Positions 10,461 to 33,456 of a stretch of DNA of 64,000 nt are shown piece after piece. How positions within the stretch are numbered: position 1 is the first letter of the stretch; every line of letters starts with the position of its first letter. The notes beneath the pieces are model-generated. The model was not told where the DNA came from, ran no database searches, and was given only the letters and a program-made list of their open reading frames with translations. The translations under genes and the position numbers were made by a program. The DNA is from Amphiscolops sp. MND2022 (Eukaryota): positions 1 through 64,000 of the forward strand of contig CAXLNC010000137.1 in the NCBI GenBank assembly GCA_964187785.1, read 5' to 3'.

Positions 10461-10479
10461 CTCTGCAGAAATGTGTCGG

Positions 10480-10596
10480 TGCTAAGCTCGAGCAAGCTTC
10501 CCTTTATCCACGAAGCTCAGAAGCTTGAGCCACATGTCAAAGCACGCAGCACAAGCTTGTCTAAGGTCAAGCTGAGGAAGAAGCTTCCTCTTAGCA
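10480..10596 (-). repeat. E1 3' LTR (117 bp)
   Basis: Direct repeat of 18112-18228 with 3 transitions; terminal inverted TGCTAAG/CTTAGCA. Confidence 0.95.
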
Positions 10597-13500
10597 CTCC
10601 CCCTTGGGGGCCCGCAGTCTTCAGCGGGGCCCCACAAGAAGGAATGCTTCTTCGCAAGGCTAAAGCTAGAGTGCGCAAGGTGGAGCTCAAGGCTCTGAAG
10701 CTCAAAAGGTGAAGGTTGTCTCGGAAGCTTCCTGTCAAAGCTCTGAGTGCTGAAGCTGTCAAAGCTGTCTGGAAAGCTCTGTCCTGAAAGCTGGCTTTCA
10801 AGCTGTCTTTCAAAGCTGCTGGGGTTGAAGCTGCTCAGGGCCAAGCTGGTTGCTGTGAAGCTGCTCTTGCCCAAGCTGCTCTGTGAAGAGCTGCTTTGTG
10901 GAGAGCTGCTCTTCAACAAGCTGTTGGTGTCCAAGCTCTTCTTGTCAAAGCCCTTGTTGTCAAAGCTCTTCCTGTCAAAGCTCTTCTTGTCCAAGCTCTT
11001 CTTGTCAAAGGTCTTCCTGGGAAAGCTCTGTGTCTCAAAGCGCTTCTCGAAGCTGCTTGTGGGAAAGCTGCTCAAGGCTAAGGTGCTTCGAGTGAAGCTG
11101 CTCTCGGCCAAGCTGCTCTCCACCAAGCTTCTTTTGTGAAAGCTGCTCCTTGCAAAGCTGCTCTGTTGGAAGCTCTGCTCTGCAAAGGTCTCTTTTGCAA
11201 GGGTCTTCTCTGCAAAGCTCTTCCTTGTAAAGCTCTTCTCTGCAAGGTTCTCTTCAAAGCTCTTGGCTGCAAAGTTCTCTTCGAAGTTCTTCTCTGCAAA
11301 GTTCGTCTCTGCAAGCTTCTTTGCAAAGCTCTGCTCTGAGCTGCTCGTTGCCAAGCTGCTCTTGCCAAAGCTGGGCTCTGCAAAGCTGCTAGCTTCAAAG
11401 CTCTTTGCTGCCAAGCTCTTGTCTGTGAAGCTGGTCTTCTCAAAAGTGTAGTTGTCAAAGCTCTGCTTTTGGAAGCTGTTGGTGGCAAAGGTGTTCTGCC
11501 TGAAGCTTCTCTCCTGCAAGTTCTTTCTGCCAAGCTGCTGTTGCTGAAGGTTTCTTCTGTCAAGCTGCTGTTTGTGAAGCTGCCTGTCTGAAGGTCCTGT
11601 TTGCCAAGCTGCTGGCTGAAGAGGTTCTGGTTTGAAGCTCTGGTCTAGCAAGCTGCTGACTGAAAAGCTGTCTGGCTGAAAGGTTGCTGTGCTGAAGCGC
11701 TGTGCTTGAAATCTGCTGGCTGAAAAGCTGTCCTGTAGGAGGGTTCTGCTGAAAAGCTGTTGTTGAAGAAGCTGTTCTTGTAGAAGTGCTTCTTTGCAAG
11801 CTGTTCCTGTCAAGCTGGGGAGGCAAAGTGCCTCTAAGCTGTTCTCTGTGAAGTTCTCTTCTTCAAGCTGGTTCTTCTGAAGCTGGCTTGTTGAAGTTCT
11901 TGTTGGCAAGCTGGTTGTTGCCAAGGTGTTCTTCTCAAGGTTCTTGTCTGCAAGCTCTTCTTCTGGAAGCTCTTTGGGAAGAAGGTCTGGTGGTGAAGCT
12001 GCTTTGGCCTCACTGCTCTGAACCAAGCTGGTGCTGAAAGGCTGCTGGTTCAAGCTGGCTGCTGGAAAGCCAGTTGTGAGAAGCTGTTCTTTGCAAGCTT
12101 CTTCTGTGTGAGTGAAGTTGTCCTCTGCAAGCTGCTTCTTGTAAAGGTTGTTTTCTGAAGGCTGCTTCTTGGAAAGGTTGTTCTCTGCAAGCTGCTTCTT
12201 GTCAAGGTTGTTCTCGCCAAGCTGTTCTGAAGCTACCTGCTGCAAAGCCAAGGTTTCAAAGAAGAAATGCTGAAAGACAAGGTTGTCTATCAAGCTGTTC
12301 TTGGCAAAGGTTGCTGCAAGCTCCTTGTGCAAGATCGTCTCTCTGAAGCTGGGGTGTTCCAAGCTGAGCTGCTGACAGGTGTTCTTCTGAAGCTGTTTGT
12401 TCTGAAGCTGCCTCTGATCTGTGGAAAGATTGTTCGGAAGATGTTGGTCTGAAAGCTGTTTGCCAAAGTTCTCTGGAAAGAACTTTTCCAAGCTGATGTT
12501 GGAAAGATCCCGTTCTGCAAGCTTCTGCTTTGAGAAGCTGGGTTTGTCTGACTGAACTGCTGCTGGCCAAGCTGCTGTTCTAAGACCTGAAGCTGACAAA
12601 GGTTCCTCTGGAAGCTGTCTGCTGATTGCTGATTCTGGATCTTGTTGGCAAAGCTGTGAAAGATAAAGCTGGAAAAGTTTGCTGTCTGGAACTGTTGCTG
12701 AAAGCTGGTTTTGCTGCTGCTGATTGTTCTGCTGTAAGCTGAGTTCCTGAAGCTGAATTTGCCAAAGATTTTGTTCAAGATGATCATAAGGACCAAGCGA
12801 ACAAGTTTTATTGGCAAGCACCTTCTCAAGCTCCTGTTCCAGAAAGTTTTGTGAAAGCTCATCCTTCTTCTCAATCTTCTTGTTGCTAAAGCTGTCATGC
12901 TGAAGCTGAATTTTGCAAGGTTGTTCTTGTCCAAGGCTGTCCTGAAGATAACCAAGCTGACAAGTTGCCAAGTTCTTGGTGAAAGAGAAGTTGTGAACCA
13001 AGAAGCTGAAACAAGACAAGGTTGTACGAAAGCTTCTTGTTGTTCTCAAAGAGGTTGTTGTCAAAGCTGATGTTGAAGCTACTCTGCTGAAAGATGTTGT
13101 TTGCAAAGTTGTCATGGAAGCTGATCTGTGGGAAGATGATGTTGACAAAGATGTTGTGAACAAGCTCTTTCTCAAAGCTCTATCTCTCCAAGCTGTGTTG
13201 CATGGAGGTTTGAGCCAAGCAGTGAATGCTAAGCTCAAGCTGTGCAAGGTCGAAGCTGACAAGGTTCTTCTGCTCAAAGCTCTCAAGGTCAAAGCTGGAA
13301 GCTGGTTTTGGGAAGTTGTTTGCTGAACTCCCCCTGAAGGTAAAGCATTGCTAAGCTGAAACCCTGTAAGCTGAAAACTCTGCTGATCTGAAAACTGAAG
13401 GCTCCGAAGCTGTCTGTTCCTGATCCTGATTGTCTGAAGCAAAGCTGCACAGATAGAAGCTCTAAGCTCAAAGCTGATCGTGTGAAAGCTATCTGCCTGA

Positions 13501-15272
13501 AGCTGGTAGCTGACACTGATTGAGCCATACTGAAAGCTCAAGCTCTGTACTGGGTCAAGCTGGTTGAAGCTCTCTAAGCTGCCTCTGCTACCCCTGAAGA
13601 AGCTAAAGCAATTGAAGCTCAAGCTGGTATCTTGGTCAAGCTGGTGCAGATAAGATGACTGAAGCTCATCTTGTTGCATGCTTGCTTGTTGAAAGCTCTT
13701 GTTGCAGTAAGCTGCTGCAAGCTCTTCTTGCTGTAAGCTGATTTTGAAAGAACAAGTTGTAAGATACAAAGCTGCACCTGCAAGATAAAAGCTCCCAAAT
13801 AGAAAGATCAACAAGCACATCTGCAAGCTCAAGATCCTCTTTGAAAAGCTGTGAGTGGAGAAGCTATTCGTCTTAGCTCTCTTGTCCTCAAGCTGATCCT
13901 TTCGAAAGCTATCTGCAGAGAAGCTGCTCGTCTCAGCTCTCTGTTTCTTATTTTGGTGCGCAATGTGGTCGACAAGCTCTTCCAAGCTCCTATCTTGTAA
14001 GCTAACTTGTTTGAAGCTCATTCTCTGAAAGCCATTTTTGTTATTCAAGCTCAAGCTCTGTAAGGTCAAGCTTTGTAAGCGATCCTCTTTGTGACTCAAG
14101 TTATCCAAGGTCAAGCTGCCAGTTGGAAAGCTCCAATTGGCGAAGATCAAGCTTTGTAAGTTGGCCTCTGTCAAGCTCAAGCTCTTCTCTGTCAAGCTGC
14201 TAAAGCGATCCCCTTTGCTCAGTGGCAAGCTCAAGCTGCATAAGGTCAAGCTCTCTGAGTCTATCTTCTCTAAGCTCAAGCTCGGTAAGGTCAAGCTGGC
14301 TAAGCTTTTGTCTGCCAAGTTCTTTGACAAGCTCTCGAAGCAAGATTCAGACAAGGCAAGCTGGCGAAGCTGAGGCTTTTCCATGGGAGGCTCTAAGGTT
14401 ACCATCCCTATAACCAAGCTAGAGCTAGGAACAAAGGAAGCAAAGCAAAGCTCAGTAGGCAAAGCTAAGGTTTCTGCAGCTCCCATGTTTATCCTAAGCT
14501 TAGCAAGCACCTGTTCTCCAGAAGCATTGTGGATCAAGCTTTCTGCAAGATTCTTGTCTGGATGAACCCTGCTAGCCTGAAGCTGATCCCTAAGTTGTTT
14601 GTGCTTGTTTCTTCTGGAGAGCCCAAGCTGCATAGCTATGGGCCTCCCATCTACAAGCTCATCTTTGAAGCTACTGATTTTCACTCCTATCTGCACATCT
14701 TTTTCAAGCTGATCCATGTCAAGTTGTTGCAGAAGCTTTCTTGAGTGAACAGCTATTGCTAGAGCTAAGTTCACTGCTTGAAGCTCTGCTTCATCTTGAT
14801 TTTGTGCACAAGCTGTTTTGCAGGAAGTTATCAAAGGAACATCCCACAATAACAAAGCTGTGCTCAGACAAGCTCTTGTCCAAGATGAGGCTGAGAAAGC
14901 TAGAAGCTCAAGGTTCTTCGCTTTCCCTCTTGCTATCTGGGTTTTTGTGTGCAAGCTTAGGTTGTAGTGCAACGTTCCAGCAAGATAACGAAGCACTTTG
15001 TGAAGCTGCTTTTCCACTTTTGTTGTTGGATTGTTCAAGCTTTGGGTGAGCACAAGCACCTCAAAGCACAGGTCTGGGCGACAAGCGGTTGTTGCCCAAG
15101 CCAATTCTCCAACAATATGTTTGTAAAGCTCCTGCCTACAAGCATCTAGAGCAAGGTTTTGCTCTAGTGCATCTTGGGAGGGCTCTTCTTCATCTAAGCT
15201 TCCTAAGGGCTCCTCTTGTTCAAGCTCATGCCGGCACAAAAGATCATGAACAAAGCAAGGTTCCAAAGACAA
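10482..15272 (-). CDS. E1 3' ORF (1596 aa): C-terminal pseudo-RT and pseudo-RNase H fused to LxSLTL repeats, a hydrophobic helix and 5-residue QL/SF repeats
   Basis: LYKHIVGELAWATTACRPDLCFEV...LHKVLRYLAGT matches the copia RT thumb (YRSLVGSLxY...RPDIxFAV...KRILRYLKGT); EAELQA, RRNKH and NLAESL match copia RNase H; the frame is open to a TAG at the end of the LTR. Confidence 0.75.
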   Translation of the reverse strand: MSLEPCFVHDLLCRHELEQEEPLGSLDEEEPSQDALEQNLALDACRQELYKHIVGELAWATTACRPDLCFEVLVLTQSLNNPTTKVEKQLHKVLRYLAGTLHYNLSLHTKTQIARGKAKNLELLAFSASSWTRACLSTALLLWDVPLITSCKTACAQNQDEAELQAVNLALAIAVHSRKLLQQLDMDQLEKDVQIGVKISSFKDELVDGRPIAMQLGLSRRNKHKQLRDQLQASRVHPDKNLAESLIHNASGEQVLAKLRINMGAAETLALPTELCFASFVPSSSLVIGMVTLEPPMEKPQLRQLALSESCFESLSKNLADKSLASLTLPSLSLEKIDSESLTLCSLSLPLSKGDRFSSLTEKSLSLTEANLQSLIFANWSFPTGSLTLDNLSHKEDRLQSLTLQSLSLNNKNGFQRMSFKQVSLQDRSLEELVDHIAHQNKKQRAETSSFSADSFRKDQLEDKRAKTNSFSTHSFSKRILSLQMCLLIFLFGSFYLAGAALYLTTCSFKISLQQEELAAAYCNKSFQQASMQQDELQSSYLHQLDQDTSLSFNCFSFFRGSRGSLESFNQLDPVQSLSFQYGSISVSYQLQADSFHTISFELRASICAALLQTIRIRNRQLRSLQFSDQQSFQLTGFQLSNALPSGGVQQTTSQNQLPALTLRALSRRTLSASTLHSLSLAFTAWLKPPCNTAWRDRALRKSLFTTSLSTSSSHRSASMTTLQTTSFSRVASTSALTTTSLRTTRSFRTTLSCFSFLVHNFSFTKNLATCQLGYLQDSLGQEQPCKIQLQHDSFSNKKIEKKDELSQNFLEQELEKVLANKTCSLGPYDHLEQNLWQIQLQELSLQQNNQQQQNQLSATVPDSKLFQLYLSQLCQQDPESAISRQLPEEPLSASGLRTAAWPAAVQSDKPSFSKQKLAERDLSNISLEKFFPENFGKQLSDQHLPNNLSTDQRQLQNKQLQKNTCQQLSLEHPSFRETILHKELAATFAKNSLIDNLVFQHFFFETLALQQVASEQLGENNLDKKQLAENNLSKKQPSENNLYKKQLAEDNFTHTEEACKEQLLTTGFPAASLNQQPFSTSLVQSSEAKAASPPDLLPKELPEEELADKNLEKNTLATTSLPTRTSTSQLQKNQLEEENFTENSLEALCLPSLTGTACKEALLQEQLLQQQLFSRTLLQDSFSASRFQAQRFSTATFQPDSFSVSSLLDQSFKPEPLQPAAWQTGPSDRQLHKQQLDRRNLQQQQLGRKNLQERSFRQNTFATNSFQKQSFDNYTFEKTSFTDKSLAAKSFEASSFAEPSFGKSSLATSSSEQSFAKKLAETNFAEKNFEENFAAKSFEENLAEKSFTRKSFAEKTLAKETFAEQSFQQSSFARSSFHKRSLVESSLAESSFTRSTLALSSFPTSSFEKRFETQSFPRKTFDKKSLDKKSFDRKSFDNKGFDKKSLDTNSLLKSSSPQSSSSQSSLGKSSFTATSLALSSFNPSSFERQLESQLSGQSFPDSFDSFSTQSFDRKLPRQPSPFELQSLELHLAHSSFSLAKKHSFLWGPAEDCGPPRGSAKRKLLPQLDLRQACAACFDMWLKLLSFVDKGKLARA
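10597..10605 (-). promoter_or_regulatory. E1 polypurine tract (AAGGGGGAG)
   Basis: Purine run directly 5' of the 3' LTR; the same AGGGGGAG core occurs in E2. Confidence 0.85.
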
Positions 15273-15335
15273 GCTGATGGTGTTGCTTGATGCTTTGTAC
15301 TCTAAGGTCCTATTGCAGAAGGTTAGGAACTTTCA

Positions 15336-15789
15336 GGATCGCGCAGAGGGTCCCAACAACGAGTGGCGGTCACTCTGCAGTGCTGCAACAAAGAGAAGGC
15401 AAACCAAAAACCTTAAATGCCGTTGTCGCAGCCCACCAAGCAGGAATGAATGTTGAATTGCTTAGCGCTGACTCCCAACGTGTGATCGTGAGGGTCAGAA
15501 AGTTGGTTGTGTACTTAAGCTCCAGCCAGGCCACCCCCAAAACAGCAAAACTCCCAAAAGCGCAGAGGGTACCACCTCACGAAGAAAATTTACCAACAGG
15601 GGTGCTGCTGGCAGATTTTTTTTTATTTTGGGGGTGCGCGTGACCATTTTTGAAAAAAAATTGCCAACAGGGGTGCTGCTGGCAGATTTTTTTTTTGTTT
15701 CGGGGGTGCGCATGACCATTTTTGTTGTGCCGGAATCGGGCGGGATCGGGCGGAATCGGGCGGGATCGGGCGGGATCGGGCGGGATCGC
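15336..15789. mobile_element. Composite insertion of about 450 bp interrupting the E1 pseudo-RT
   Basis: Absent from E2 at the homologous site; bounded by GGATCGC at 15336-15342 and 15783-15789; contains a roughly 72-bp tandem duplication and (ATCGGGCGGG)n. Confidence 0.8.
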
Positions 15790-16933
15790 TTTTGGATTGG
15801 ATCTAGGGAGACTAAAGCAGAAAGCTCACAAAAGAGATCTTCCTGCTGAAGTTCGCTCCCTCCTATCAAGATGTCTCTCTTGTGAATCAAGATCACAAGC
15901 TCATCTCCAGAGAAAAGATTCTGATCCATCTTGTTTTGATCTAACCCTAAGCTCCTAAGGTGTTTTCCTAAAGCATCCTCTGAGCAAGCTGTCGTTGCTC
16001 TTGTCATTGTAAGCTGCCATTTTTGTCTCAAGCTTAAGGTCAGTAAGATCCTCAAGCTGATCTCTTGGCGCTCCTTGTTGCTTAAGCTATGTGGTTTCTC
16101 TGCAGCAAGCTCAATCTCCTTGATGAGCCTAAGCTTTTCCAAGTTCCTAAGTTGGCTTGCTGCAGGTTGCTGACCTTTCTGCTCAAAGCTCCTCTGATCG
16201 ACTGGATCTTGAGAAGCTTTTCTGGCAGAAGGTTTCTTTTTCTTCCTCCTTTTCTTTCTTTTGGCACCTTTCTCTTGGCAAGCTGTTGGTGTTCCTAAGA
16301 TTGCTGTGTTCTTAACTTGTTGTTGCCTAAGGTTCTCCAGAGAAAAGCTATGGTAACAAGCTCCCCCTGAAGATGTGCATGCTTCTTCTGGAGTTCTGCC
16401 TTTGTCATCGAGTAAGCTCTCACTATGATCTTGAAAGCTACTCCCCCTTAAGGTGCTCAAGCCAAGTTCTTGAGGACAAGCTGGCATGTAAAGCTGAAGT
16501 CCTCTTGGTTGAAGCCTGGTTTTCGCCCCTAAGCTGTTGACAAGGTAGTACTCCTCGAAGTTGGTTCGAATCAAGCTAAGTTGGTTGGCCAACAAGATGT
16601 CCATCCCAATCAAAGCTTGTTCGACATTGGCAATCACAAAGCTCACACAAAGATTCAACTGTGACCCAACAAGCTGAACAGTTCTTCTCCCAAAAGTCTC
16701 TATCAAACTGCCACTCACGCTCCTAAGTTTCAAGGTGCTCTCTACAGGACTAAGCTCAACTTGTGAAGCAAAGTCCTTTGGTGCCAAGCTGATAGCTGCA
16801 CCTGTATCTATCAAGATGCCCCAAGCTGCTGTGTTCTTAGTTCCTATTCCTAAGTTGCTGTTGTTGCTGTTGCTTGGGCATCTGCAAGCTTGCTGTATGT
16901 TCCCTAGGGTTCGTTCTTCTTTACCTAAGCTGC

Positions 16934-16994
<61 letters not shown>

Positions 16995-17357
16995 CGGCCA
17001 AAGCTCATGTTCTCCGCGCGAAGCTGTTGCAGGCTGTTGCTGCATTGCAGTCTTTTGCTGGAAGTTATTCCAGCAAGTTGTTCTTTTGCTATTTTCGTTT
17101 TGAAGCTCACAAGCTGGGTTGTAAGCTTTCCAGGTGACCGTGCCAAAGGTCACTCTTTTGCTTGGCTTCTGTTGGCCAAGTTCTGCCCTCTGTGAGTCAA
17201 AGCTGTAAGCTGTGCCCACTATTTTCCCCTCTTGGCCATCTTGGTTGTATTGGCTGAAGCTGCCTAAGCTCAGTCCAATTGTCATCATTTTGTGGCCTAA
17301 GTTTTCGAAGCTCAGGTTTGCTTCTTGGTGGTCTAAAGCCAGTTGGGCTAGACTCAC
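15790..17357 (-). pseudogene. E1 middle ORF segment: aspartic protease, basic tract and N-terminal pseudo-RT
   Basis: ILIDTGA (DTG at 16800-16808) and LIGMDIL; KRKKRRKKKKP; RILLTLSLRQKWQL and VILIHKRDILIGG (HKRD at 15873-15884, in place of copia YVDD). Cut by the insertion. Confidence 0.85.
16935..16994 (-). repeat. (AAC)20 poly-Asn tract inside E1
   Basis: TTG run on the plus strand, in frame in the E1 ORF. Confidence 0.9.
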
Positions 17358-17471
17358 CTCCCAGAGTTTGGGTGAAGCTACCTAAGTTTGCTCCATCCAG
17401 GTCTGGTTTTGACTCTGGATTGGTTTTGTCAAGGTCGAAGTTTTGCAAGCCCGACTCTCGACTGCTCTTGT

Positions 17472-17505
<34 letters not shown>

Positions 17506-18081
17506 GTCGGTATGGTTGTTGTGGGTGTAGGTGTGGTTGTTGTTGTTGTCGTCTGTTGTGTTGTTGGTGTTGTTGTTGTTGTTTTGCTTGCTGGCATCTT
17601 CTTTTGCAAGCTTTGCATCCAAGCTGTGCACGGCTTGGTGCATAGCCTCTAAGGCTTTTCTAAGCTGAACTCTGTGGTTCCAACTGTCATCCTCAAGCTC
17701 AAACTTATCCAAGTCAAGCTGGGTGGGGGGAGGGTCTTTCTTCTGAAGCTTCCCGGTTTGCTCCTCAAAGCCAAAGTGGCTAAGAGGAGTTTGCTCGGAG
17801 AAGCTCTCTCTAGGGTCTTCCTGTGTTGAAGCTGGAGGAAGCCTATAAAGAGGCAACCTCTCAGCTTGCTTCTGAGTCTTCCTAAGGAAGCTTGCCCTGT
17901 GCAAGCTTCTCTCCCATGTGGACCGTGGTTGATGCTCAGTGCTGAGAGGCATAGGGTGGACCGGGTAAAGTGATCGGTCACCCTGGGGCCTCAACACTGG
18001 CATCGGGGATGTTTCCCTACCTAAACCTAGCCTGTAGCTCCTGGTCTGACGATGCTTGCTATGCATGCAAAGAAAAAACAC
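17336..18081 (-). pseudogene. E1 5' ORF segment in the gag position (coiled-coil and Asn/Thr/His-rich, no recognisable Gag motif)
   Basis: Homologous to E2 26138-26945; separated from the middle segment by a 1-bp insertion at about 17336 (GGCTTTAGA versus E2 GGCTTAGA). Confidence 0.6.
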
Positions 18082-18099
18082 AGGAGCCGCAGAACCCTA

Positions 18100-18111
18100 G
18101 CTCTGCTACCA
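18100..18111 (-). promoter_or_regulatory. E1 primer-binding site TGGTAGCAGAGC (tRNA-iMet type)
   Basis: Directly follows the 5' LTR, begins TGG (complement of CCA) and resembles eukaryotic initiator tRNA-Met 3' ends. Confidence 0.85.
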
Positions 18112-18228
18112 TGCTAAGCTCGAGCAAACTTCCCTTTATCCACGAAGCTCAGAAGCTTGAGCCACATGTCAAAGCATGCAGCACAAGCTTGTCTAAGGTC
18201 AAGCTGAGGAAGAAGTTTCCTCTTAGCA
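18112..18228 (-). repeat. E1 5' LTR (117 bp)
   Basis: Direct repeat of 10480-10596. Confidence 0.95.
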
Positions 18229-21200
18229 GTCGGGGATTTTTGTTGTATAGATTTTGGAGGATTTTGCCGGGGATTTTCCTGGAGGATTTTTCTGGGCACC
18301 TTTTCCCACAAAAATGAGGAGGAAAAATCCGGCGACAAAATCCGCGAAAAAATCCGGCGGCCCAAAAATAAAAATCCGCGAAAAATCCGTTCTGCCAGAA
18401 TCCGACCCTAATATATGCCCCATAGCGAAATTGCAATCGCAACGATTCAAAATCAAATGCTTGAAAATGTTTTAACCACGTCCATGTCCAAAAAGGGGAT
18501 TTACTAAATGTTCGGTGTTCTCGAAACGAGCGAGTTTACTAAACCCCCGGGTTCGTACGAAATTTGTGGCTTCTCCTTTAGAAAGAGCCAGAAAAGAGCC
18601 TCGAAGTTCGGTTCGATTTTGGGCCGCGAACGGCGTTTAGTAAACAACTGTTCGGCAGCATCCGGGAGGGCACCGAATTGGACTGGACGTACTTTAAACA
18701 ATTCCTAAAATCGCACGATTTGAAATTGCGAGGGCGCAACCAGAATAGCCTAGAGAAGGAATCGTAAGCAAAACTTGCAATGTTGCGTGACCCCCTTGGT
18801 GTGCAACCAACTTTCCCCTGCCACTAACCGGTCAAAAATCATCAAAGTAAATCCCAGTGAGTCTCAGCCAGGTAAGTTGTGGTCCTGGTCTGCCCAAGTG
18901 CTGGTATGTGAACGGCAATGAATTGCCGAACTGATTCGCTTGGAGTTCATCTCGGTAATTGCCCGGCACCCAATTGCAGGAGCTAATTCTCGGGAGTAAA
19001 CAAAAGCGCCCGGGAGCGAAGGGGCCGCCAGAATTTGTCCCAGAAAGTCCCCTCCAAAAAGGGGTCTTTGGGAGTCGTATTTTTTCCAAGGAATCAGAGG
19101 AAAAACGTACACTCAAAATCTGCGAATTTTGAGGGAAGACACTCTTTGGGCCACTTGCTCGGCCGGCCCCTTTTGTCTACTTCCGAAATTCGCTGAGAGC
19201 TTTTCAGGTCGGTAATGCTTTAATACGATTTTAAGGCAAAGCTCACCTAGGCCCTCTATTAAGTGCCGGTTTTAATCTTTGTGAATTCTTTCTGGTGGGT
19301 GCCTACCGTTTGTCCGAAATCATAGCAGAAATAATTCGAAAATAATATTTTTCTGTATCTGCATCTGCTACGAAATAAAAATTATGTCCAAAACAATTTT
19401 GATCTGCTGTGCCCCCCCCTCCAGGCTGCAAAGAGCAGCTGTCTCTGTATCTGCTACCAAAAATAGATTCCAAAACATTTTCGTCTGTATCTGTATCTGC
19501 TATGAAATGCAAAATTAATTCGAAAATAATTTTTCTCTGTCTGCAATGCCATTTGGACGAACGGTAACCCCCCCTTTGCTAACCCCAGGGTAGCTGAAAA
19601 GGCCCCTTGGCGGTCTCTGCAGAGTGGTGTGGCAGGGGTCTACAGCCGATTGGCAATCCCTACAGATTCCTATCATTTCCCCTCACGCTTGACACCCTCG
19701 TCGGACCCCAATAGTCACTTTGCACGGAAGGCTCTTTCAGCTACCCCAGGGTTAGCACCAGGGGGTTTAGGCACTCGCCAGTTTTTTCTTTTGTAAGTCT
19801 TGGGTGCTTAAGTGCCGGTTTTGGGGTCTTAAGCGCAGGTTTTGGGGTCTTAAGCGCCGGGTTTTCTCGAAAATGAAGAAGAAAAAAGAACAAAAGGATC
19901 AACATTTCTAGGAAAGGTCCTCCGAGCTGTGCCTTGAACAATACTAAGTAATGCTTGTGTTGACAATGGTAACCCCCTGTCTGGGACTTAGTGTCCCAGA
20001 TGAGATTGGACCCCCCATCGCGAGATAGGTGTGGCAATGCCCCTGCCGCACTATGTTTTTCAGGGTGTCGCAAAGTAGTGGGACACTAAGGTCTGGGAAT
20101 CTTGACACCCTGCTCCGCGAAGTGCAGCACTTCCCTCATCTTCCCTAGCAAGGCCCCCCATTTCTGCTGCTCTCGTCCCTCTGCTTCCTTCGAGTAGCCC
20201 CAGGTATGGGTCTGGCCCCCCAAGCGCCGCTGGAGGGCCTCCCCCTCCAACCCCCTTCGTAGGACACCTCGCCAACGCCAGCCCAGCCGCCCCCTCCCGG
20301 AGCATCGCAAAAAGAGCCAGGAAAGGCGGGAAGAAGGAGGGGTATAGTGGGGAGGGAAGGGCTGTGGCTTGAGGTCCTCCAATTCCAAGGGGGGGGGGGA
20401 GGGGTTGACCCTCCAAAGAGCACTTTGGGCCAGATCCACATCTGGGGGCTCTCAATTGGTTGAACCTCCAACGAGCACTTGGGGCCAGACCCACATGTGG
20501 GGGCCCTCGAGTCGTCTGCCTAGGACCTAGGTGCGTAACGAGGGCAAATCGTTGGACAGCTCAGAGAAAGAACCATGACAACATGTCAACAAATGTCCTA
20601 CAAATATCGGAGAATTTGTCCCAAATCGCCCGCAAACACAACTACTCATCTCATGTTTTTTGCTATACCACAAAACGGGCATAATGAAACGGAGCGCAAC
20701 GCACAAAGCAACAGAAGTCGTCAAAGGGCAACTTTCACCACAATTGCCGGTAGGTAGTTTCGCTTCTGAAGCCACAGGAAGATCAGCACTTGCAAATGCG
20801 TCGCTGAAGTCCATTTTGTTACACCTCAATTTGCGGCTTACCGAATCTCTCAGATTTTCCAATCTTCTTGGACATTTTCGGACATCTCTTGCTTAGTCGG
20901 TTGCTGCTTTTGTTTGTGGGGGTGCCCTACAGGAGCGGAGAAGGCGTCGTGCGGAGGAGCGGTTGTCCAAAACGCGAAAATGGACAGCACGATTTGCTCA
21001 GTTAATTCTGAGATTTTCAAGTGTTTTTTAGAGCAAACCTTCAAGGGGCAGAAGAAGAAAACGGACTCTCCAAAAACACCCTTCTGGACGACCGTTTCCC
21101 CTGCACGACGCCTTCTCCGCTCCTTCGGCGCGCTCTGAGTTTGGCAACTCTGTTAGGACGAAGAAAACTGTCCCTGTCCACAGGGTGTCCTTCTGGAGGG

Positions 21201-21811
21201 GGGTTCTAAGAGATTACCTTCTTAAAAGAAGCTGGATGCTTGAATTCCTAGGAAGTAAGAGGAAAAGGCAGCTTCTAAGAAGTCTCTTTTCAGACCCCCT
21301 TCCAGAAGGACACCCTGTGGACAGGGACAGTTTTTTTCTGTCTTCTGTCCAGTGTTGGGGAAATCCAAACGGGGGCTTAGCAAACGGGGGGGGGGCTTAG
21401 CCCAAAAGGCGCCAATTGGGCCCAAAAAGGCCCTTTCGGGGGAATTTCTGCTGCCTCCCCGCGGCTGTGAGGTGCGGAGGAATCGGTCCCAATCAGCCCC
21501 GAAAAGGCCCCGATAGGCCCAGGCCTGACAAGGCCCGATTTTCCCGGAAGGATTTTTCAACGTGCCGCAAAAGGGGGTACGCAAAAGGGGGTAGGTCACT
21601 TTTTTCTGTTTCGGTCACCTTTTGGTAACCATTTTGTCACTTTTTTTGACGCTTTTGGTCACTTTTTTGCCTATCCCCTTTTGCCTCCCCCCTTTTGCGG
21701 CAGGGTGAATTTTTGCCCGATTTTCTCTGAAAATTCGGGGCTTAAGCCCCCGTTTGTGAGCCCCCCTTTGGATTTCCCAAACAGTGCACGCCCGTTAGAA
21801 GACGGCCGGAC

Positions 21812-21925
21812 CTCCGGAAGCTTCTTGAAGATGGAACCAAAGTTCTCAACGATGTCTTGCTGCTGCTGCTGCTGCTCCTCGGCGCCCTTCTCATCTCCCT
21901 CTGCGGCCTCCTCTTCGGCCTTCTC
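21812..21925 (-). CDS. Probable internal exon of an unidentified host gene (EKAEEEAAEGDEKGAEEQQQQQQDIVENFGSIFKKLPE)
   Basis: CAG|G acceptor, GAG|GT donor, 38 codons in phase 0, strongly coding-like composition. Confidence 0.55.
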
Positions 21926-23811
21926 CTGCTCTCTGCACACAGTTCTAAGGAGGGGCATGGGACGAGACGCAAGAGTTGCGCAATAGTTTGGAGACAGAAA
22001 AGGTACCACAAAGAAACCGTGTGACACAAAGAGTTTGCCGAATGCTCGGGTGAACTTTCTGGTGCAATTTGCGTCAGAGCCCTTGTTTTGCTGGGTAATG
22101 ACCGCGGTAACCCCCTCGAATTGTTGAGAAGATTCTTTGGTGATGTTCGTGCGATTTTTGGGCTTTGTGGGTCCTTTTAGGCTCCTGAATAGTTGCACAA
22201 GAGTTGAAAGGCATACATGCGCGCCAAGCTCTGGGCTTTTTTTAGCCACTGACCTTGCGATTCGCGTCTGTTTAGCTTCGGTTTAGCGTCAGCTTAGCGT
22301 CAGCTCGGCGTCGTTCAGCGTCCATTTAGCGTCGTTTTACCGGCCGTTTAACGTCAATTTAGCCTTGGTGGGGAGGTTGAGACACATCAATGTGTTTGGT
22401 CTTTCTCGGCCGAGCATTTGGCAAAAAGATGCCCGGGGGTTGGCGCACCAAAAGGCCATTGAAGAGTACCTAACTAAAACGTTTTTTTTGAGCATGCTTT
22501 CGGGCCCCTTTCCTCACGCCCTTTTTCCCTCATTCTTCGGCCCCCTCTTTCCCCTTCAGGCCCTGTTCCCTCTTTTACCTCTTTTCCCATCTTCACCTCC
22601 CCCTTTATCCCCCTTTTCTGACTCCTGGAAAAACTCTGATTTAGGAACCCCTATGATTTGGGTACTCTTTAGTGTCCTGCTGAAATAGTTCAGTTATGTT
22701 CGACTATTGCGCAATAGTTGCGCCTCGAAACCCTGAAAAAACAAGAGGAAGTACCTGGCAACCAGCTCTTTTGTGGGAACAATTGCGTTATCTTTTTGTG
22801 AAACTATAGCATCTCTTCCCGCGACCACTTTACTCCGACCCCAATACCACTCCTATACAAACATACACACACCGACACTGGCCTGATATACTGGACAAAC
22901 GCACGAAACACAGGAGACCTGAGAAGTTCCAAAACGCACCTGCCCAAAGGGCGCCCTCGAATTTTACTAGCATTTCACTTGATTTTCTGACTTTCACTGA
23001 TCAAATGTCACTAGAATTCTTCTAGACTTTTACTGAATGCTTACTTGTCTACCGGTGCCCTTTGGAATGGTGCCCATTGGGTGCGCTCTCAAATACAAAA
23101 ACACCTCGTAATCGGACTGCGTTACCATTGTGGAAGATAGCATTACGTAAGTAATTCTCGTAAGATTTAGGTCAGGTAATTTGGGTTAGGTCATTCAATA
23201 TAGCTTCCCCCCTCTGTAAACATAGAACATAGAACAGAAGCAATTACCGAAAATGATTCGTCTGGAGTAAAAGCGAGGTAGATAATCTAATGAAGATCGG
23301 CAAACACCCCCTCTAAGTGATTCACACTCGGCATGTGTGGTACCGCAATTCGCTGTCGGTGCACTTGGCGTGTGTGGTGATTGTTCATAAAGTTCGAATG
23401 TCCTTTGTATTCTCGAGTAGCACACGGCCATGTTGACTTCTGTCTTCTGATTTTTCTGTGCACGCTCCAATACGTCCGCTCAATCAGGTTCTAGAGAAGC
23501 TGACCCGGTCAAGCTTAAAGGTGCGCGAAGCTGGGCCAGGGCCTTTGTGCTTGCATAAAGAGGGCGTTTAGCCAGCAATTTCCCTATCGGGCAAAAGGAC
23601 TTCTGAAAAACAAAGAATACGGCAAAAAAAGGCAAAATTGTCCTTTCAATGTCCTCTTCCGAAAATCCTGTTAAGCTGAGAAAAAATCTTGCACAAGAAG
23701 GCACCCTTATCGTTTCAAACCCTTGCCAAAAAATCCATTTGAACGGATGCGTCTTGTTTACTTACAGTTGAGGTCTTTTCACTTACGGTTCGTCTTTTTT
23801 ATTTACGGCGA

Positions 23812-24037
23812 GGGAACCGTAAGCAAAAAAGACCAAACCCAACTTCCGGACGGGGAGAACCGTAAGCAAAAAAGACCAAACCTAATTTCCGGACAGGGGG
23901 GAACCGTAAGTAAAAAGGACCAAACCGATTTTTCCACCGTGAGCAAAAAAGACCAAACCGAACTTCAACCGTAAGTAAAGAAGACCAAGCCAATTGACCG
24001 TAAGCAACAAAGACCAGCCGTAAGTAAAAAAGACTTA
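23812..24037. repeat. Degenerate tandem array of ACCGTAAGCAAAAAAGACCAAACC units
   Basis: About 6-7 units with short, related linkers; inverted copies just upstream; runs into the gap. Confidence 0.75.
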
Positions 24038-24237
24038 NNNNNNNNNNNNNNNNNNNNNNNNNNNNNNNNNNNNNNNNNNNNNNNNNNNNNNNNNNNNNNN
24101 NNNNNNNNNNNNNNNNNNNNNNNNNNNNNNNNNNNNNNNNNNNNNNNNNNNNNNNNNNNNNNNNNNNNNNNNNNNNNNNNNNNNNNNNNNNNNNNNNNNN
24201 NNNNNNNNNNNNNNNNNNNNNNNNNNNNNNNNNNNNN
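24038..24237. other. Assembly gap (N run)
   Basis: Run of N. Confidence 1.
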
Positions 24238-24559
24238 CTGGTCATGCTATGCCATAGGTGCACCATTTGGTGTAGGACCTACACCCAATGAAGGGGGTTA
24301 CACCACTACGGCGGGATTTCAAACGGGGGGTTTTCCTGATCTGGACTTTTTTTGTCCTTTTTTGTCCAATCCCAATGTTTCTGGGATTTTCCCGATTTGT
24401 CCGGGGATTGTCCGGGGATTTTCCTGATTGGTCCTTTTCCTCTTTCTCGGCCTATGCACAGCACCTATGAGGAACAGTCCCGACAAAGTCCGGTAAACCT
24501 TCTCTCAACAAATGGTCCAGGCATAATTTTATGGGGACTTCTTTGGTCCCCCGGCTTAG

Positions 24560-24830
24560 TGGCCCCATATCGCGCGATATTGCGATACTATCGCTGCGAT
24601 ACCCCATATCGCGCGATACTTTTTTCAGGGAAGTTGACACTACCCCAAAATGGTGCGATATCCCCCCTTGGTACTTAGTTCCACACAGGCACATCTGTGC
24701 GATATCCCACCTGCAACATATCGCGGGATAATTGCGCGATACCCCACAAAAACAAGCACGAAAGAGTTTTGCGATATTATCGCTGCAAGTATCGCGCGAT
24801 ATGAAAAGTATCGCTACTGGGCCTCTAAGT
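24560..24830. repeat. GCGATA/TATCGC-rich palindromic interspersed repeat (related copy about 38640-38880)
   Basis: Clustered ATATCGCGCGATA motifs in both orientations. Confidence 0.65.
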
Positions 24831-25726
24831 CCCCCGGAACAAGTGATTTTTGTCGTGCGATGTGAAATCATCTCCGCGTTGCGATACACTTTCATTGCGA
24901 TTTGGGCTGCTGCTGCGGACATCCACTGCGATGCAGGCCACAATGCAAGCATCTCTGCGAGTGCGATGCCGGGAGGTGGTGGACTTAGTGAGGTGCCAGG
25001 GGCACCGGAGCTCGTTCCTTGTAATAATCGCTTGAGCTTTGGACAGTGCTGCCGCAACACAGCAACTCAACCCAACTCACCAACACAGGAACCACCCCCA
25101 TCACCATTTTGGCAGTTAACTCGGACCATGGTCTGAGTTTCGCTGGAGAGGAAACTCGGACCATGGTCTGAGTTTCCTTTTCTCTACATATTTACAGTAC
25201 TCTTGAATTCTGGCGGTTCGAATTCTCCGTGGTCTGAGTTTTGGTCTGAGTTTCCTCATTTTATGGGGATGGGGGTGGTTCCCGCACCGTCAACCAACAG
25301 AGAGAAATTGTCAAGGAAACGTTGGACAGACCTTCATATCGAATGGCCCAATTTAGGCGACAAAATCCAGGACCCTTCTTGGGGACAACAACAAGAGAGA
25401 CGAAAACCCCTTTTGTGGCACCTTCTGGACCAACATTTTGAGGCCGACCCACGGTGGCTTAAAGTGGCCTAAAACTGGCTTAAAGTGGCTTAAGGTGGCT
25501 AGTGCAATGGGCTGGATTGCGTCCAACCGAGGAAACGTCTCTAACAATGCAGGGGTTCACATCGCCACCTTGCATTCAGTTGTCCCATTGCTGTGGTTGC
25601 ACTCCGCCTGGAAGAGCTGCGCAAACACCCAACGGTTGGGGGTAGCCGAAAAAATGGGACTGCCAGTGCGAGATTTTTTTGCGAGAAAAAATTGCGAGAA
25701 AACACGCCTTCCGTTCAGGGGTTTCC

Positions 25727-25953
25727 AAAGGGTGGTTTTTGTGAGGGGGGGGGGGAAATCTCAATGATTGGGGTGGTGCGCGCACCGGTTGCAATAACTA
25801 ATTTTGCGTCAAATCCCTGTAAAAATCTCCAAGTTTCTATAGGATTCAATAAGGAGGCCCCGCAGAAAAAAACGCAAAATTAATTATTGCAACCGGTGTG
25901 CGCACGACCCCAATTATTGAGATTTACCCCCCTCACAAAAACCCCCCTTTGGA
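25727..25953. repeat. Palindromic interspersed repeat (GTGCGCGCACCGGTTGCAA family; related copy about 44735-44960)
   Basis: Inverted arms and a second similar copy in the window; ends approximate. Confidence 0.6.
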
Positions 25954-26010
25954 AACCCCCAATCCTTTCCGCGGAAGTATGGGTTTGAAAGTGCGAGAAA
26001 AATCTGAGAC

Positions 26011-26095
26011 TGCTAAGATGACTCTGACCATGGCTTGGGCTTTGGCTCAAGCTTCTGAGCTTGGTACAAAAGGGGAAGCTTGCCAGAGCTTAGCA
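26011..26095 (+). repeat. E2 5' LTR (85 bp)
   Basis: Identical to 33372-33456; TGCTAAG...CTTAGCA. Confidence 0.95.
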
Positions 26096-26107
26096 TGGTA
26101 GCAGAGC
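26096..26107 (+). promoter_or_regulatory. E2 primer-binding site TGGTAGCAGAGC (tRNA-iMet type)
   Basis: Directly after the 5' LTR; identical to the E1 PBS. Confidence 0.85.
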
Positions 26108-26137
26108 TTTGGTTTTTGCTCCTTCTGTGTCCTTTCT

Positions 26138-26945
26138 TTGCTTAGCATGCATAGCAAGCATCTTAAGACCAGAAGCGACAGGCTAGGCGTAAGACTTAGG
26201 GAAACTTCCCCGATGCCACTTTGGAGGCCCCCACCTTGCCGACAACCTTACCCGGCAAAGGTGAAGCCTCTCCAAAGTGAGCATCAACCACGGACCACTT
26301 GGGAGAGAAGCTTGTACAGGGCAAGCTTCCTCAGGCAGGCTCAGGAGCAAGCTGAGAGGTTGCCTCTTCATAGGCTTCCTCCAGCTTCAACCCAGGAAGA
26401 CAGCTTCACCGAGCAAACTCCTCTTGGCCACTTTGGCCTTGAGGAGCAAACCGGGAAGCTTCAGAACAATGCCCCCCCCCCCAACCCAGCTTGAACTTGA
26501 TAAGCTTGAGCTTGAGAATGACAGCTGCAACCAAAGAGTTCAGCTTAGAGAAGCCCTAGAGGCAATGCAGCAAGCAGTGCACAGCTTAGCTGCAAAGCTT
26601 GCAAAAGCAAAAGCTAGCAAGCAAGACGACAACAACAACAACAATGCCGAGACACCAACCAACAACACCAACAACAACCAGCACAACAACCATACCAACA
26701 AAGATAACAACAACAACGACAACAACAACAAGAGCAGTCGAGAGTCGGGCTTGCAAAGCTTCGACCTTGACAAACCCAATCCAGAGTCAAAACCAGACCT
26801 GGATGGAGAGAGCTTAGGCAGCTTCACCCAAATGATGGGAGATGAGTCTAGCCCAACAGGCTTAGACCATCAAGAAGCAAGCTTGAGCTCCAACAACTTA
26901 GGCCACAACAAAACAATGACAATTGGACTGAGCTTAGGTAGTTAG
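26138..26945 (+). pseudogene. E2 5' ORF segment in the gag position, frameshifted
   Basis: ORFs 26138-26494 and 26277-26945 together match the E1 5' ORF; frame change at the C-run near 26472-26481. Confidence 0.6.
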
Positions 26946-26985
26946 GCCACAACAAAACAATGACAATTGGACTGAGCTTAGGTAG
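26898..26985 (+). repeat. Perfect 44-bp tandem duplication inside E2
   Basis: TTAGGCCACAACAAAACAATGACAATTGGACTGAGCTTAGGTAG twice; single copy in E1. Confidence 0.9.
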
Positions 26986-27196
26986 CTTCAGCCAAAACCA
27001 AGATGGCCAAAAGGGGCACAAAGTGAGCTCAGCATACAGCTTTGACTCACAGAGGGCAAAGCTTGGCCAACAGAAGCCAGGCAAAAGAGTGACCTTTGGG
27101 ACGGTCACCTTGAAAGCTTACAACCCAGTGTGAGAGCTTCAAAACGAAAATAACAAAAGAACAACTTGCTGGGATAGCTTCCAGCAAGAGAATGCA

Positions 27197-30100
27197 ATGC
27201 AGCAACAGACTGCAACAGCTTCCGGGAAGGAGCTTCAGAAGGCATGCCAGCAACAACAACAACAAAACAACAGCTTAGGTAGAGAAGAGCAAACCCTAGG
27301 GAACATACAGCAAGCTTGCAGATGCCCAAGCGACATGAACAACAGCAACTTAGGAACAACAACTAAGAACACAGCAGCTTGGGGCATCTTAGTTGACACA
27401 GGTGCAGCCATCAGCTTGGCACCTCTGACCTTTGCTCCAGAAAGTGAGCTTAGGCCAGTCGAAGGCACCTTACAACTTAGGAGTGCAAACGGCAGCTTGA
27501 TAGAAACTTATGGCAGAAGAAGTGTGCAGCTTGTAGGTTCAGAGCTTGGATTGCATGTGAGCTTTGTGATTGCCAATGTGAGTCAAGCTTTGCTGGGGAT
27601 GGACATCTTACTAGCAAACCAGCTTAGCTTGATTCGAACTAGCTTAGGAGAATACTACCTTGTCAACAACTTAGGGGCGAAAACCAAGCTTCAACCAAGA
27701 GGCCTTCAGCTTTACATGCCAGCTTGGCCTTTAGAACTTGGTTTGAGCACCTTAAGGGGGAGTAGCTTTCAGGATCATAGTGAGAGCTTACTCGATGACA
27801 AGGTCAGAACTCAAGATAGAGCTTTGGCAACTTCAGGGGGAGCTTGCTATGATAGCTTGCCTCTGGAAAACCTTAGGGAACAACAAGCTAAGAACACAGC
27901 AACCTTAGGAACAACAACAGCTTGCCAAGAAGAAGGTGCCAAAAGAAAAAGGAAGAAGAAGAAGAAGAAGAAACCTTCTGCCAAGATAGCTTCTCAAGAT
28001 CTAAGCGATCAGAGGAGCTTTGAGCAGAAAGGTCAGCAACCTGCAGCAAGTTCACTTAGGAATTCGCAAAAGCTTAGGATCATGAAGGAGATTGAGCTTG
28101 CTGCAGAAAACCCAAACAGCTTAAGCAACAAAGAGCTGCAAGAAATTAGCTTGAGGATCCTTCTGTCCTTAAGCTTGAGACAAGGATGGCAGCTTACAAT
28201 GACAAGAGCAACGACAGCTTGCTCAGAGGATGCTTTGCAAAACCACCTTAGGAGCTTAGGGTTAGGTCAAAACAAGATGGATCAGAATCTGTTCTCTGGA
28301 GATGAGCTTGTCATCTTGCAGCATAAGAGAGACATCTTGATTGCAGGGAGCGAACTTCAGCAGGAAGATCTCTTTTGTGAGCTTTCTGCTTTAGTCTCCC
28401 TAGAACATACCCAAAAGCTTGGTGAAGATGCTCAGGTCAGCTTTTGCAACAGGACCTTAGAGCACAAAGCATCAAGCAACACTATCATCATAGCTTTGGA
28501 ACCTTGCTTTGTTCATGATCTCTTGTGCCGGCATGAGCTTGAACATCAGGAACCCTTAGGAAGCTTAGATGAAGAAGAGCCCTGCAAAGATGCATCAGAG
28601 CAAACCTTTGCTTTGGATGCTTGTAGGCAGGAGCTTTACAAACACAGTGTTGGAGAATTGGCTTGGGCAACAACAACTTGTCGCCCAGACCTTTGCTTTG
28701 AGGTGATGCAGCTTACCCAAAGCATAGCCAATCCAACAACAAAAGATGAAGAGCAGCTTCTGAGAGTGCTTCGTTATCTTGCTGGAACGTTGCACTACAA
28801 CCTAAGCTTGCACACAAAAATCCAGATAGCAAAGAAGGAAGCTGAGAACCTTGAGCTTCTAGCTTTCTCAGCCACATCTGGTACAAGAGCTTGTCACAGC
28901 ACAGCTTTGTTCTTGTGGGATGTTCCTTTGATAACTTCCTGCAAAGAAGCTTGTGCACAAAATCAAGATGAAGCAGAGCTTCAGGCAGTGAACTTGTCTC
29001 TTGCAATGGCAGTTCACTCAAGAAAGCTTCTGCAACAACTTGACATGGATCAGCTTGGCCAAGATGTGAAGATAGGACTCAAAACCAGTAGCTTTCAGGA
29101 GGAGCTTGTAGATAGGAAACCCATAGCCATGCAGCTTGGGCTTTCCAGAAGAAACAAGCACCAACAACTTAGAGATCAGCTTCAGATAAGCAGGGTTCAT
29201 CCATACAAGAATCTTGCTGAGAGCTTGATCTACAATGCTTCTGGAGAAGAGGTGCTTGCTAAGCTTAGGATTGACACAGGAGCTGCAGAAACCTTAGCTT
29301 TGCCTACTGAGCTTTGCTTTGTTTCCCTTTTTTCTAGCTCTAGCTTGGTTGGGATGGTTTCCTTAGAGCCTCCCATGGAAAAGCCTCAGCTTCGCCAGCT
29401 TGCCTTGTCTGAATCTTGCTTCGAGAGCTTGTCAAAGAACTTGGCAGAGAGAAGCTTAACCAGCTTGACTGTACCGAGCTTGAGCTTAGAGGAGATAGAC
29501 TCAGAGAGCTTGACCTTATGCAGCTTGAGCTTGCCACTGAGCAAAGGGAATCGTTTTAGCAGCTTGACAGAGAAGAGCTTGAGCTTGCCAGAGGCCAACT
29601 TAGCTAGCTTGATCTTCTCCAATTGGAGCTTTCCAACTGGCAGCTTGACCTTGGATAACTTGAGTCGCAAAGAGGATCGCTTACAGAGCTTGACCTTGCA
29701 GAGCTTGAGCTTGAATCATAAAAAGGGCTTACCCAGAATGAGCTTCGAACAAGTGAGCTTACAAGATGGGAGCTTGAAAGAGCTTGAAGAGCACTTAGCC
29801 GACCAAAATGCCAACAAGAGAGCTGAGACGAACAGCTTCTCTGAAGAAAGCTTTCGAAAGGATCAGCTTGAGCAAAAGAGAGCCAAGACGAATGGCTTCT
29901 CTAAGCAGAGCCTTTCACAGAGGATCTCGAGCTTGAAGATGTGCTTGTTGATCTTTCTACTTTGGAGCTTTTATATGGCAGGTTCAGCTTTGTATCTTAC
30001 AACTTGCTCTTTCAAAATCAGCTTCCAGAAAGAGAGCTTACAGTCAGAACAGCTTGTGGCAGCTTACAGAAGCATCAGAAGCACAAGTAGCTTACAGCAA

Positions 30101-33362: not shown

Positions 33363-33371
33363 GAGGGGGAG
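33363..33371 (+). promoter_or_regulatory. E2 polypurine tract (GAGGGGGAG)
   Basis: Purine run directly 5' of the 3' LTR. Confidence 0.85.
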
Positions 33372-33456
33372 TGCTAAGATGACTCTGACCATGGCTTGGG
33401 CTTTGGCTCAAGCTTCTGAGCTTGGTACAAAAGGGGAAGCTTGCCAGAGCTTAGCA
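33372..33456 (+). repeat. E2 3' LTR (85 bp)
   Basis: Identical to 26011-26095. Confidence 0.95.

Follow-up and report, generated by a model that had tools for sequence, protein, structure and literature searches.

The window analysed here is a stretch of 64,000 nucleotides (contig CAXLNC010000137.1 of assembly GCA_964187785.1, positions 1 to 64,000 of the forward strand), deposited under Amphiscolops sp. MND2022. It contains two related long terminal repeat (LTR) retrotransposons, named here copy A and copy B, both of which encode a retropepsin-like protease with intact motifs followed by parts resembling reverse transcriptase (RT) and RNase H whose catalytic residues are lost at the same sites. 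The copies stand head to head, 7.8 kb apart, are 84–90% identical in DNA, and their homology ends within the LTRs. Their features, including target-site duplications (TSD), primer-binding sites (PBS) and polypurine tracts (PPT), are the following.

10480..18228, minus strand: copy A, 7,749 bp, an LTR element complete from end to end
18229-18233 and 10475-10479: perfect 5-bp TSD (CCGAC) flanking copy A
18112..18228, minus strand: 5' LTR of copy A, 117 bp, ends TGCTAAG...CTTAGCA, matching the 3' LTR at 114 of 117 positions
10480..10596, minus strand: 3' LTR of copy A, with the stop codon of the long open reading frame (ORF) in its last bases
18100..18111, minus strand: PBS of copy A, TGGTAGCAGAGC, of initiator-methionine tRNA (tRNA-iMet) type, adjoining the 5' LTR
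10597..10605, minus strand: PPT of copy A, AAGGGGGAG, adjoining the 3' LTR on its upstream side
16593..16820, minus strand: retropepsin-like protease of copy A (DTGAA 16808-16794, IGMD 16610-16599)
14943..16109, minus strand: RT-like pseudo-domain of copy A (TMTRATTA 16010-15987, HKRD 15884-15873), split by a private insertion at 15322-15787
14463..14942, minus strand: RNase H-like pseudo-domain of copy A (FSASSW 14897-14880, DEAEL 14795-14781, LAESL 14549-14535)
10482..14366, minus strand: C-terminal tail of copy A, 5-residue repeats running over about 1,300 codons, in the same frame as the RNase H-like part
26011..33456, plus strand: copy B, complete LTR element of 7,446 bp, with an LTR pair identical at 85 of 85 positions
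26011..26095, plus strand: 5' LTR of copy B, 85 bp, followed at 26096-26107 by the same PBS as in copy A
33372..33456, plus strand: 3' LTR of copy B, directly preceded by the PPT GAGGGGGAG at 33363-33371
27383..27610, plus strand: protease of copy B (DTGAA 27395-27409, LGMD 27593-27604)
28100..28819, plus strand: RT-like pseudo-domain of copy B, with motif A Asp replaced by Arg (28196-28219), motif B deleted, HKRD at 28322-28333, and palm and thumb kept
28820..29398, plus strand: RNase H-like pseudo-domain of copy B (FSATSG 28865-28882, DEAEL 28967-28981, LAESL 29213-29227) and a family-specific C-terminal block
29399..33371, plus strand: repeat tail of copy B, spread over three frames by private frameshifts
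24038..24237: assembly gap (N) in the spacer between the copies, outside both

The LTRs of copy A begin with TG and end with CA, and their termini form an inverted repeat of 7 bp (TGCTAAG / CTTAGCA). Each copy also carries lesions of its own, namely a frameshift near 17337 and the insertion of about 466 bp in copy A, and several frameshifts in copy B. Copies A and B are independent insertions and not the product of a local duplication. The N gap lies 5.8 kb past the 5' LTR of copy A and 1.8 kb ahead of that of copy B; no frame discussed here crosses it, and it affects only the relative placement of the copies. A search of the window for tRNA genes matching the PBS found none. The insertion of copy A, in the RT-like palm, stands in place of about 22 nt of copy B and has an internal tandem duplication of 73 bp (15581-15652 / 15652-15724).

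In intact members of the family to which both copies belong, called here the dead family, the polyprotein has about 2,400 residues and consists of an N-terminal region, the retropepsin, a pseudo-enzyme with RT palm and thumb and an RNase H fold, and a pentapeptide-repeat tail. The tail (10482-14366 and 29399-33371 in the window, residues 1086-2416 in the ORF of member L034) matched Pfam Pentapeptide_4 above the cut-off, with an E-value of 2e-12, and its approximately 1,300 codons also hold a hydrophobic, transmembrane-like stretch.

Loss of the catalytic residues

A previous sequence-only reading of the window had named the motifs HKRD, TMTRATTA, FSASSW/FSATSG, EAE, LAESL, DTG and (I/L)GMD, and each of them was confirmed at its stated place in both copies. 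It had also aligned them by hand to copia motifs. For evaluating this alignment, a family profile of 13 members of the same genome, with 37–84% identity, was compared with a canonical profile of nine copia RT-RNase H sequences. Both profiles aligned over 369 columns (hhalign probability 100, E-value 5.1e-40), which upheld the hand alignment. The Asp of motif A in QxDVxTAF stood opposite the Arg of TMTRATTA, and 40 template columns with LYGL(K/R), including motif B, were missing, as the deletion of the LYGLKQ region had been described. YVDD and HKRD (15873-15884 on the minus strand, 28322-28333 on the plus strand) faced each other. The proposed RNase H losses were likewise borne out: D1, the first Asp of SDSDW, lay opposite Ala or Ser and D3, the Asp of ADxxTK, opposite Glu, while the Glu of EAE was retained. 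In addition, D2 lay opposite Ser.

The claim that no integrase (IN) lies between protease and RT also held, as only 210–263 residues separate the DTG from the start of the RT-like part in 57 family members, and Pfam rve gave no match in the window copies or in the scanned family members. The linker of 130–150 residues between the protease and the RT module showed no similarity to RT fingers (hhalign probability 1%). Thus the dead family lacks the RT catalytic triad (motif A Asp and the YxDD of motif C), motif B and, with three of its four acidic residues gone, the RNase H DEDD set, all of which characterise autonomous Ty1/copia elements. The protease motifs DTG and (I/L)GMD are intact in copies A and B, as originally reported. 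Pfam gag-asp_proteas gave 22.8–29.4 bits against a cut-off of 28.2, and one of the five scanned sequences passed it; from its intact D(T/S)GA and (I/L)(I/L)G(M/L)D motifs, the retropepsin is apparently active.

Single sequences gave no Pfam RVT_2 or RNase H match even at an E-value of 1. As single-sequence Pfam searches are blind to this RT and RNase H, profiles were required for establishing the homology. The RVT_2-type RT-RNase H homology, together with the LTRs, PBS, PPT and 5-bp TSD, identifies the family as a descendant of Ty1/copia.

Survey of the family

In the genome, the RT/RNase H-like module has at least 95 matches, from 84% down to 23% identity, and many of them are free of stops and lie within open frames of 900–2,416 codons. 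Public protein sets provided 212 further relatives, all of them from the ENA long-read metagenome assembly ERZ25074608. The survey took in as many as 225 relatives, with identities as low as 37% and a coverage that differed by site. None of the 146 relatives covering the motif A column has Asp there (R in 133, K in seven, E in three and other residues in three). The RNase H Glu is present in 177 of 183 relatives. At D1, 175 of 181 have S, T or A, at D2, 128 of 138 have S or T, and the D3 position is occupied by H, E or Q. The protease DTGA was found in 57 of the 59 relatives extending far enough upstream.

Among 17 aligned members, the YVDD position is occupied by HKRD, HKKD, HKSS, CKHE, DQTC, CADC, FQGE, HENH and others, and the columns around it are fixed (GDELV...LIGG, RPD, PT..QL..VLRYL.GT, AEL, GRP.A.QLGLSR, NLA). 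The 13 genomic members have 59 invariant columns, and their RT/RNase H regions contain no stops. Within the same E-value cut, YVDD was confined to four RT-complete proteins. Three of these four, P0144, P0146 and P0155, are strikingly close to the dead family. They have in common with it the LSLRILL helix and the block LLPKL..TRAVDS...SSFFIGM after the RNase H, and retain DISSAF, LYGL, YVDD, DSDWAG, EAELYA and NPADVLTK. The losses are therefore common to the whole family and not a property of the window pair; the scenario in which most relatives retain YVDD and an integrase was found only in the sister or partner lineages, not inside the family.

Single origin and recent transposition

A maximum-likelihood tree of 47 RT/RNase H sequences was built with copia elements from the host chromosomes as outgroup. 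All 27 dead members in it formed one clade (Shimodaira-Hasegawa-like approximate likelihood-ratio test, SH-aLRT, 100), whose sister, with a support of 99, was the RT-complete P0144 group; this group comes from the same assembly as the metagenomic relatives. Both groups were nested among RT-complete marine copia elements. The knockout had been proposed to predate the split of copies A and B, and the losses were indeed common to all 27 sampled dead members.

Five members were followed over their full length, namely copies A and B and three from other contigs. Their LTR pairs are 97.4–100% identical, all have PBS and PPT, and four of the five are flanked by perfect 5-bp TSDs at unrelated sites, although their lineages are about 30–45% apart in RT/RNase H protein sequence. 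The three members on other contigs have uninterrupted frames of 2,250–2,416 codons, and a fourth contig has one of 2,093. Young LTR pairs, TSDs and open frames in diverged lineages agree with the earlier suggestion that the family went on spreading with the pseudo-enzyme. The integrase and the polymerase active sites were lost once, in one ancestral lineage, which then radiated and moved recently.

Selection on the dead domains

The ratio of non-synonymous to synonymous substitution rates (dN/dS) was calculated pairwise with the NG86 method in four full-length members, with the following ranges.

Protease: 0.28-0.45
RT-like part: 0.31-0.55
RNase H-like part: 0.39-0.82
Linker: 0.57-0.77
Tail: 0.5-1.0

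A wider set, with every usable pair among the 13 genomic members, gave a median dN/dS of 0.49 for the RT-like part, all 72 of its 72 pairs having a bootstrap upper bound below 1, and one of 0.48 for the RNase H-like part, below 1 in 58 of 66. The dS of the RT-like part between lineages was 0.5–0.8. The constraint is moderate but real; it is greatest in the protease and in the dead RT, and the formerly catalytic columns show none.

The dS of the middle of the tail was unusually low (0.27–0.38 versus 0.5–0.95 elsewhere), with a dN/dS of 0.8–1.0, which hints at constraint at the nucleotide level.

Predicted fold

Whether the palm and thumb survive was examined by structure prediction. The AlphaFold model had a predicted local distance difference test (pLDDT) score of 70–90 over RT-like residues 10–240, and its comparison with the RTs of HERV-K, MMLV, foamy virus, Ty3 and HIV gave Z values of 8.2–10.1 (VIA-align). 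The top 30 Foldseek matches in AFDB Swiss-Prot were all Ty1/copia Pol polyproteins (E-values 6e-12 to 1e-9); against the PDB, only weak RT matches were obtained (E-values above 0.02). According to the model, both palm and thumb survive and their fold is kept with the chemistry gone.

RT-complete relatives as possible partners

Across the 1.07-Gb assembly, the 19-nt junction between LTR end and PBS was found at 44 places, exclusively on small contigs; the 13 large contigs lack it. The same small contigs contain RT-complete relatives whose match to a canonical RT-RNase H spans its whole length and is free of stops (C405, C869, C1157, C1767, C114, C1849, C620, C1279, C1228 and others). In C869, C1279 and C1228 the junction lies about 4.1 kb upstream of the RT (dead family: 2.0 kb), and the block between protease and RT is homologous to the integrase of P0239, a relative from TARA. 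C1279 and C1228 carry the exact 19-mer. In the P0239 integrase (residues 488–640, TARA contig L055) the motifs HHCC and D,D,E can be recognised, and a probe made from integrase matched RT-complete relatives only. Pfam rve misses the P0239 integrase even at an E-value of 10, so a domain-based annotation would label the autonomous members as integrase-less too.

The 5' end sampled from C869, an element with a complete RT and the integrase-like block, encodes a genuine Gag, which includes a CCHC knuckle, and has an LTR of 86 bp (TGCTAAGA...GAGCTTAGCA) with the same termini as the dead family, followed by the PBS TGGTAGCAGAG. The P0144 contig ends in the PPT and LTR termini of the dead family. In wheat, autonomous and non-autonomous pairs have been called by identical PBS and LTR termini (PMC11302176), and both are common to the dead family and its relatives bearing RT and integrase. 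As LTR termini, PBS and PPT are shared with these relatives, trans-mobilisation of the dead family by the sister autonomous lineage seems likely from the sequences.

Interpretation and alternative explanations

Copies A and B are best explained as members of a non-autonomous ('semi-autonomous') family of LTR retrotransposons derived from Ty1/copia. Its founder, a single ancestral lineage, was left without integrase, RT fingers, motif B or the catalytic Asp of either RT or RNase H; the family then split into many sub-lineages and has transposed recently. Reverse transcription and integration would be provided in trans by the RT, RNase H and integrase of a sister autonomous copia lineage of the same organism, with the same LTR termini (TGCTAAG...CTTAGCA), PBS (TGGTAGCAGAG) and PPT (GGGGGAG), whose Gag would probably be borrowed as well. 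About 2,400 codons stay open although a non-coding parasite needs no ORF, and the constraint is firmest on the protease and the pseudo-RT; consequently, the protein presumably aids the transposition of its own RNA, and the dead domain would act without catalysis for the benefit of the element. We hold this reading as a whole, that is the identity of the family together with a trans-mobilised and selected pseudo-enzyme, with good confidence.

How the dead domain would act is a more tentative matter. Released by the protease of the element, it may bring its own RNA into the particles of the partner, its most likely role being that of an adaptor binding nucleic acid or the partner, or of a non-catalytic subunit; taken alone, either specific role is somewhat doubtful. 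The same reserve applies to the fuller proposal of a selected subunit or RNA-delivery adaptor, freed by the protease, that docks onto the replication machinery of the autonomous sister. If this were true, the pseudo-enzyme would be key to the success of the parasite, in a stable two-element system of a probable dinoflagellate in which a dead polymerase is kept for its function.

Several results weigh against this explanation. The flanks of copy B (GAGAC / GACTC) form an imperfect TSD. The pLDDT of the RNase H-like part was below 50 over most of its length, and a dN/dS of about 0.5 is moderate, below the constraint expected for an active enzyme domain. The intactness of the partner candidates from the same genome is judged from full-length matches without stops. 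No Gag was recognised in the dead family by BLASTP with the C869 Gag, Pfam, Atlas or alignment, and packaging must therefore be wholly borrowed or mediated by an unrecognised domain. None of the RNA sequencing runs contains the stretch. Finally, the predicted heterodimer of the dead RT/RNase H with the sister RT (residues 1–520 of P0144) scored 0.00, which is evidence neither way.

A different function was also considered, in which the pseudo-RT polyprotein is a dominant-negative decoy against the autonomous partner, either in competition between parasites or for the benefit of the host. The thumb, connection and RNase H folds kept without catalysis would suit a decoy, as would the abundance of the dead family, as only three of 112 cluster representatives (E-value ≤ 1e-30) were identified as close RT-complete proteins. 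However, a pure decoy gives no advantage in cis to the copy encoding it, yet constraint is found along lineages that still transpose. We consider this explanation unlikely.

Alternatively, the elements could be ordinary non-autonomous ones with a functionless ORF, held open by a recent burst and by repeats poor in stops. The very young LTR pairs, the poorly conserved N-terminal region and the dN/dS of the tail, 0.8–1.0 in its middle (residues about 1501–2000 of the reference ORF) and 0.5–1.0 in its three segments, are in line with this. The RT-like part argues otherwise, as its dN/dS stays below 1 in every one of the 72 pairs at a dS of 0.5–0.8 between lineages. Moreover, the 13 diverged RT/RNase H regions lack stops and keep 59 invariant columns at 37–84% identity, and the catalytic columns vary freely while structural columns beside them (GDELV...LIGG) are fixed. 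A functionless ORF is thus quite improbable. The tail of the dead family showed no significant homology to P0144 and P0227, two active relatives.

Decay of two siblings from one dead copy, or a local inverted duplication, would make the shared lesions meaningless and could be suspected from two broken copies lying head to head at 7.8 kb, but it is hardly credible: flanks, TSDs and LTR lengths (117 versus 85 bp) differ, homology stops at the LTR ends, the LTR pairs (97.4% and 100%) are far more alike than the copies themselves, and the same losses recur in as many as 225 relatives with identities as low as 37%, the frames of many of them being intact. The family survey, the LTR/TSD anatomy and the tree refuted it. 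Nor is there any real prospect of a domesticated, immobile host gene family of copia origin, which the long conserved ORF and a pentapeptide-repeat tail unlike those of transposable elements might recall, since every sampled member has LTRs, PBS and PPT, perfect TSDs flank four of five at unrelated sites, LTR pairs reach 100% identity and the LTR-end/PBS junction is found at 44 places. The LTRs, TSDs and LTR identity of the sampled members contradict that possibility.

Comparison with known elements

Non-autonomous LTR retrotransposons are normally non-coding, such as large retrotransposon derivatives (LARD) and terminal-repeat retrotransposons in miniature (TRIM), or encode only Gag. In the literature we found non-autonomous LTR elements keeping Gag, and no copia lineage that conserves a protease together with an RT/RNase H whose catalytic sites are erased. 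The closest parallels are the autonomous/non-autonomous pairs of wheat that retain some coding capacity, RLG_Cereba/RLG_Quinta, RLG_Sabrina and RLG_WHAM (PMC11302176, PMC9744471). As in these pairs, the dead family is a derived lineage without RT and integrase functions and with an intact ORF, its LTR termini, PBS and PPT match those of an autonomous relative, and it arose once within the autonomous lineage and then diversified. However, the wheat elements are Ty3/gypsy, keep Gag (plus a domain of unknown function) and have pol deleted, whereas the dead family is Ty1/copia, has no recognisable Gag and keeps, under selection, the protease, an RT/RNase H module devoid of catalysis and a very long repeat tail.

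With canonical Ty1/copia elements (Pseudoviridae), including SmTCL of Symbiodinium, a genus in which autonomous copia elements have been described (PMC5776459), the dead family shares the order protease, RT, RNase H. It also has in common with them the RVT_2-type thumb and connection, the copia-type RNase H, the tRNA-iMet-type PBS and the 5-bp TSD, and its nearest active relatives are copia elements of marine protists, from TARA and other marine metagenomes. It differs in the absence of integrase, RT fingers and motif B, in the change of the motif A Asp to Arg, in an unconserved YVDD and in the loss of three of the four RNase H acidic residues. Furthermore, its LTRs have just 85–128 bp and an ORF of about 2,400 codons fills nearly the whole element.

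An RT fold without polymerase chemistry is known in HIV-1 p51, which has a structural or nucleic-acid-binding role. The p51 subunit has the same sequence as the polymerase domain of the active p66 and is inactive through its conformation, whereas in the dead family the active site has been erased genetically.

A deep, species-rich and recently mobile clade thus retains a protease and a polymerase fold with the chemistry erased at a single origin. It offers a natural experiment on what the RT/RNase H fold does beyond catalysis (particle assembly, choice of RNA, parasitism of a partner) and a testable pair of autonomous element and parasite outside plants. As the dead family is invisible to Pfam RVT_2 and rve, annotation of transposable elements based on domains would miss or misclassify it. 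Caution is needed because the family sits on small contigs, probably cobiont DNA within a host assembly.

Source of the small contigs and other elements of the window

The 13 large contigs (C1–C13) are rich in ordinary copia elements with YVDD and do not contain the dead family. On the small contigs (C109–C1887) the family was observed together with spliced-leader sequences, and the assembly looks like two genomes. The metagenome assembly holding the relatives, ERZ25074608, is of low coverage, and the sequencing runs that partly contain the stretch are labelled as four different organisms and as marine metagenome. The 21-nt spliced leader of dinoflagellates has matches on the small contigs C1301, C131 and C1910, either perfect or differing at one position; the reversed control gave none. 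The absence of the family from the large contigs, the metagenomic relatives, the marine metagenomic origin of the nearest active relatives, the mixed run labels and the leader matches indicate that the source of the window is not the host with 13 chromosomes. Provisionally, the window is probably DNA of a cobiont (a dinoflagellate) rather than of the host.

A full spliced-leader match was not found in the window, where only an 11-nt box is present. This conserved internal box, (T)TGGCTCAAG, was observed in every LTR examined (window, L053, L050 and L052), both in the dead family and in the autonomous-type C869 element, and equals the 3' end of the dinoflagellate spliced leader. Its positions in the window are the following.

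10524-10534, 18156-18166, 26041-26051 and 33402-33412: LTR internal box (T)TGGCTCAAG

Two further features were observed in the window. A LINE-like element on the minus strand (45953-52700) gave split RVT_1 matches, with an assembly gap (46041-46240) inside it, and its 5' end adjoins a (GAA)n run and the spliced-leader-like sequence GCCATTTTGGTTGCAAG. Just downstream of copy B, an ORF on the minus strand (34036-34743) matched RCC1 repeats and is possibly a fragment of a cellular gene.

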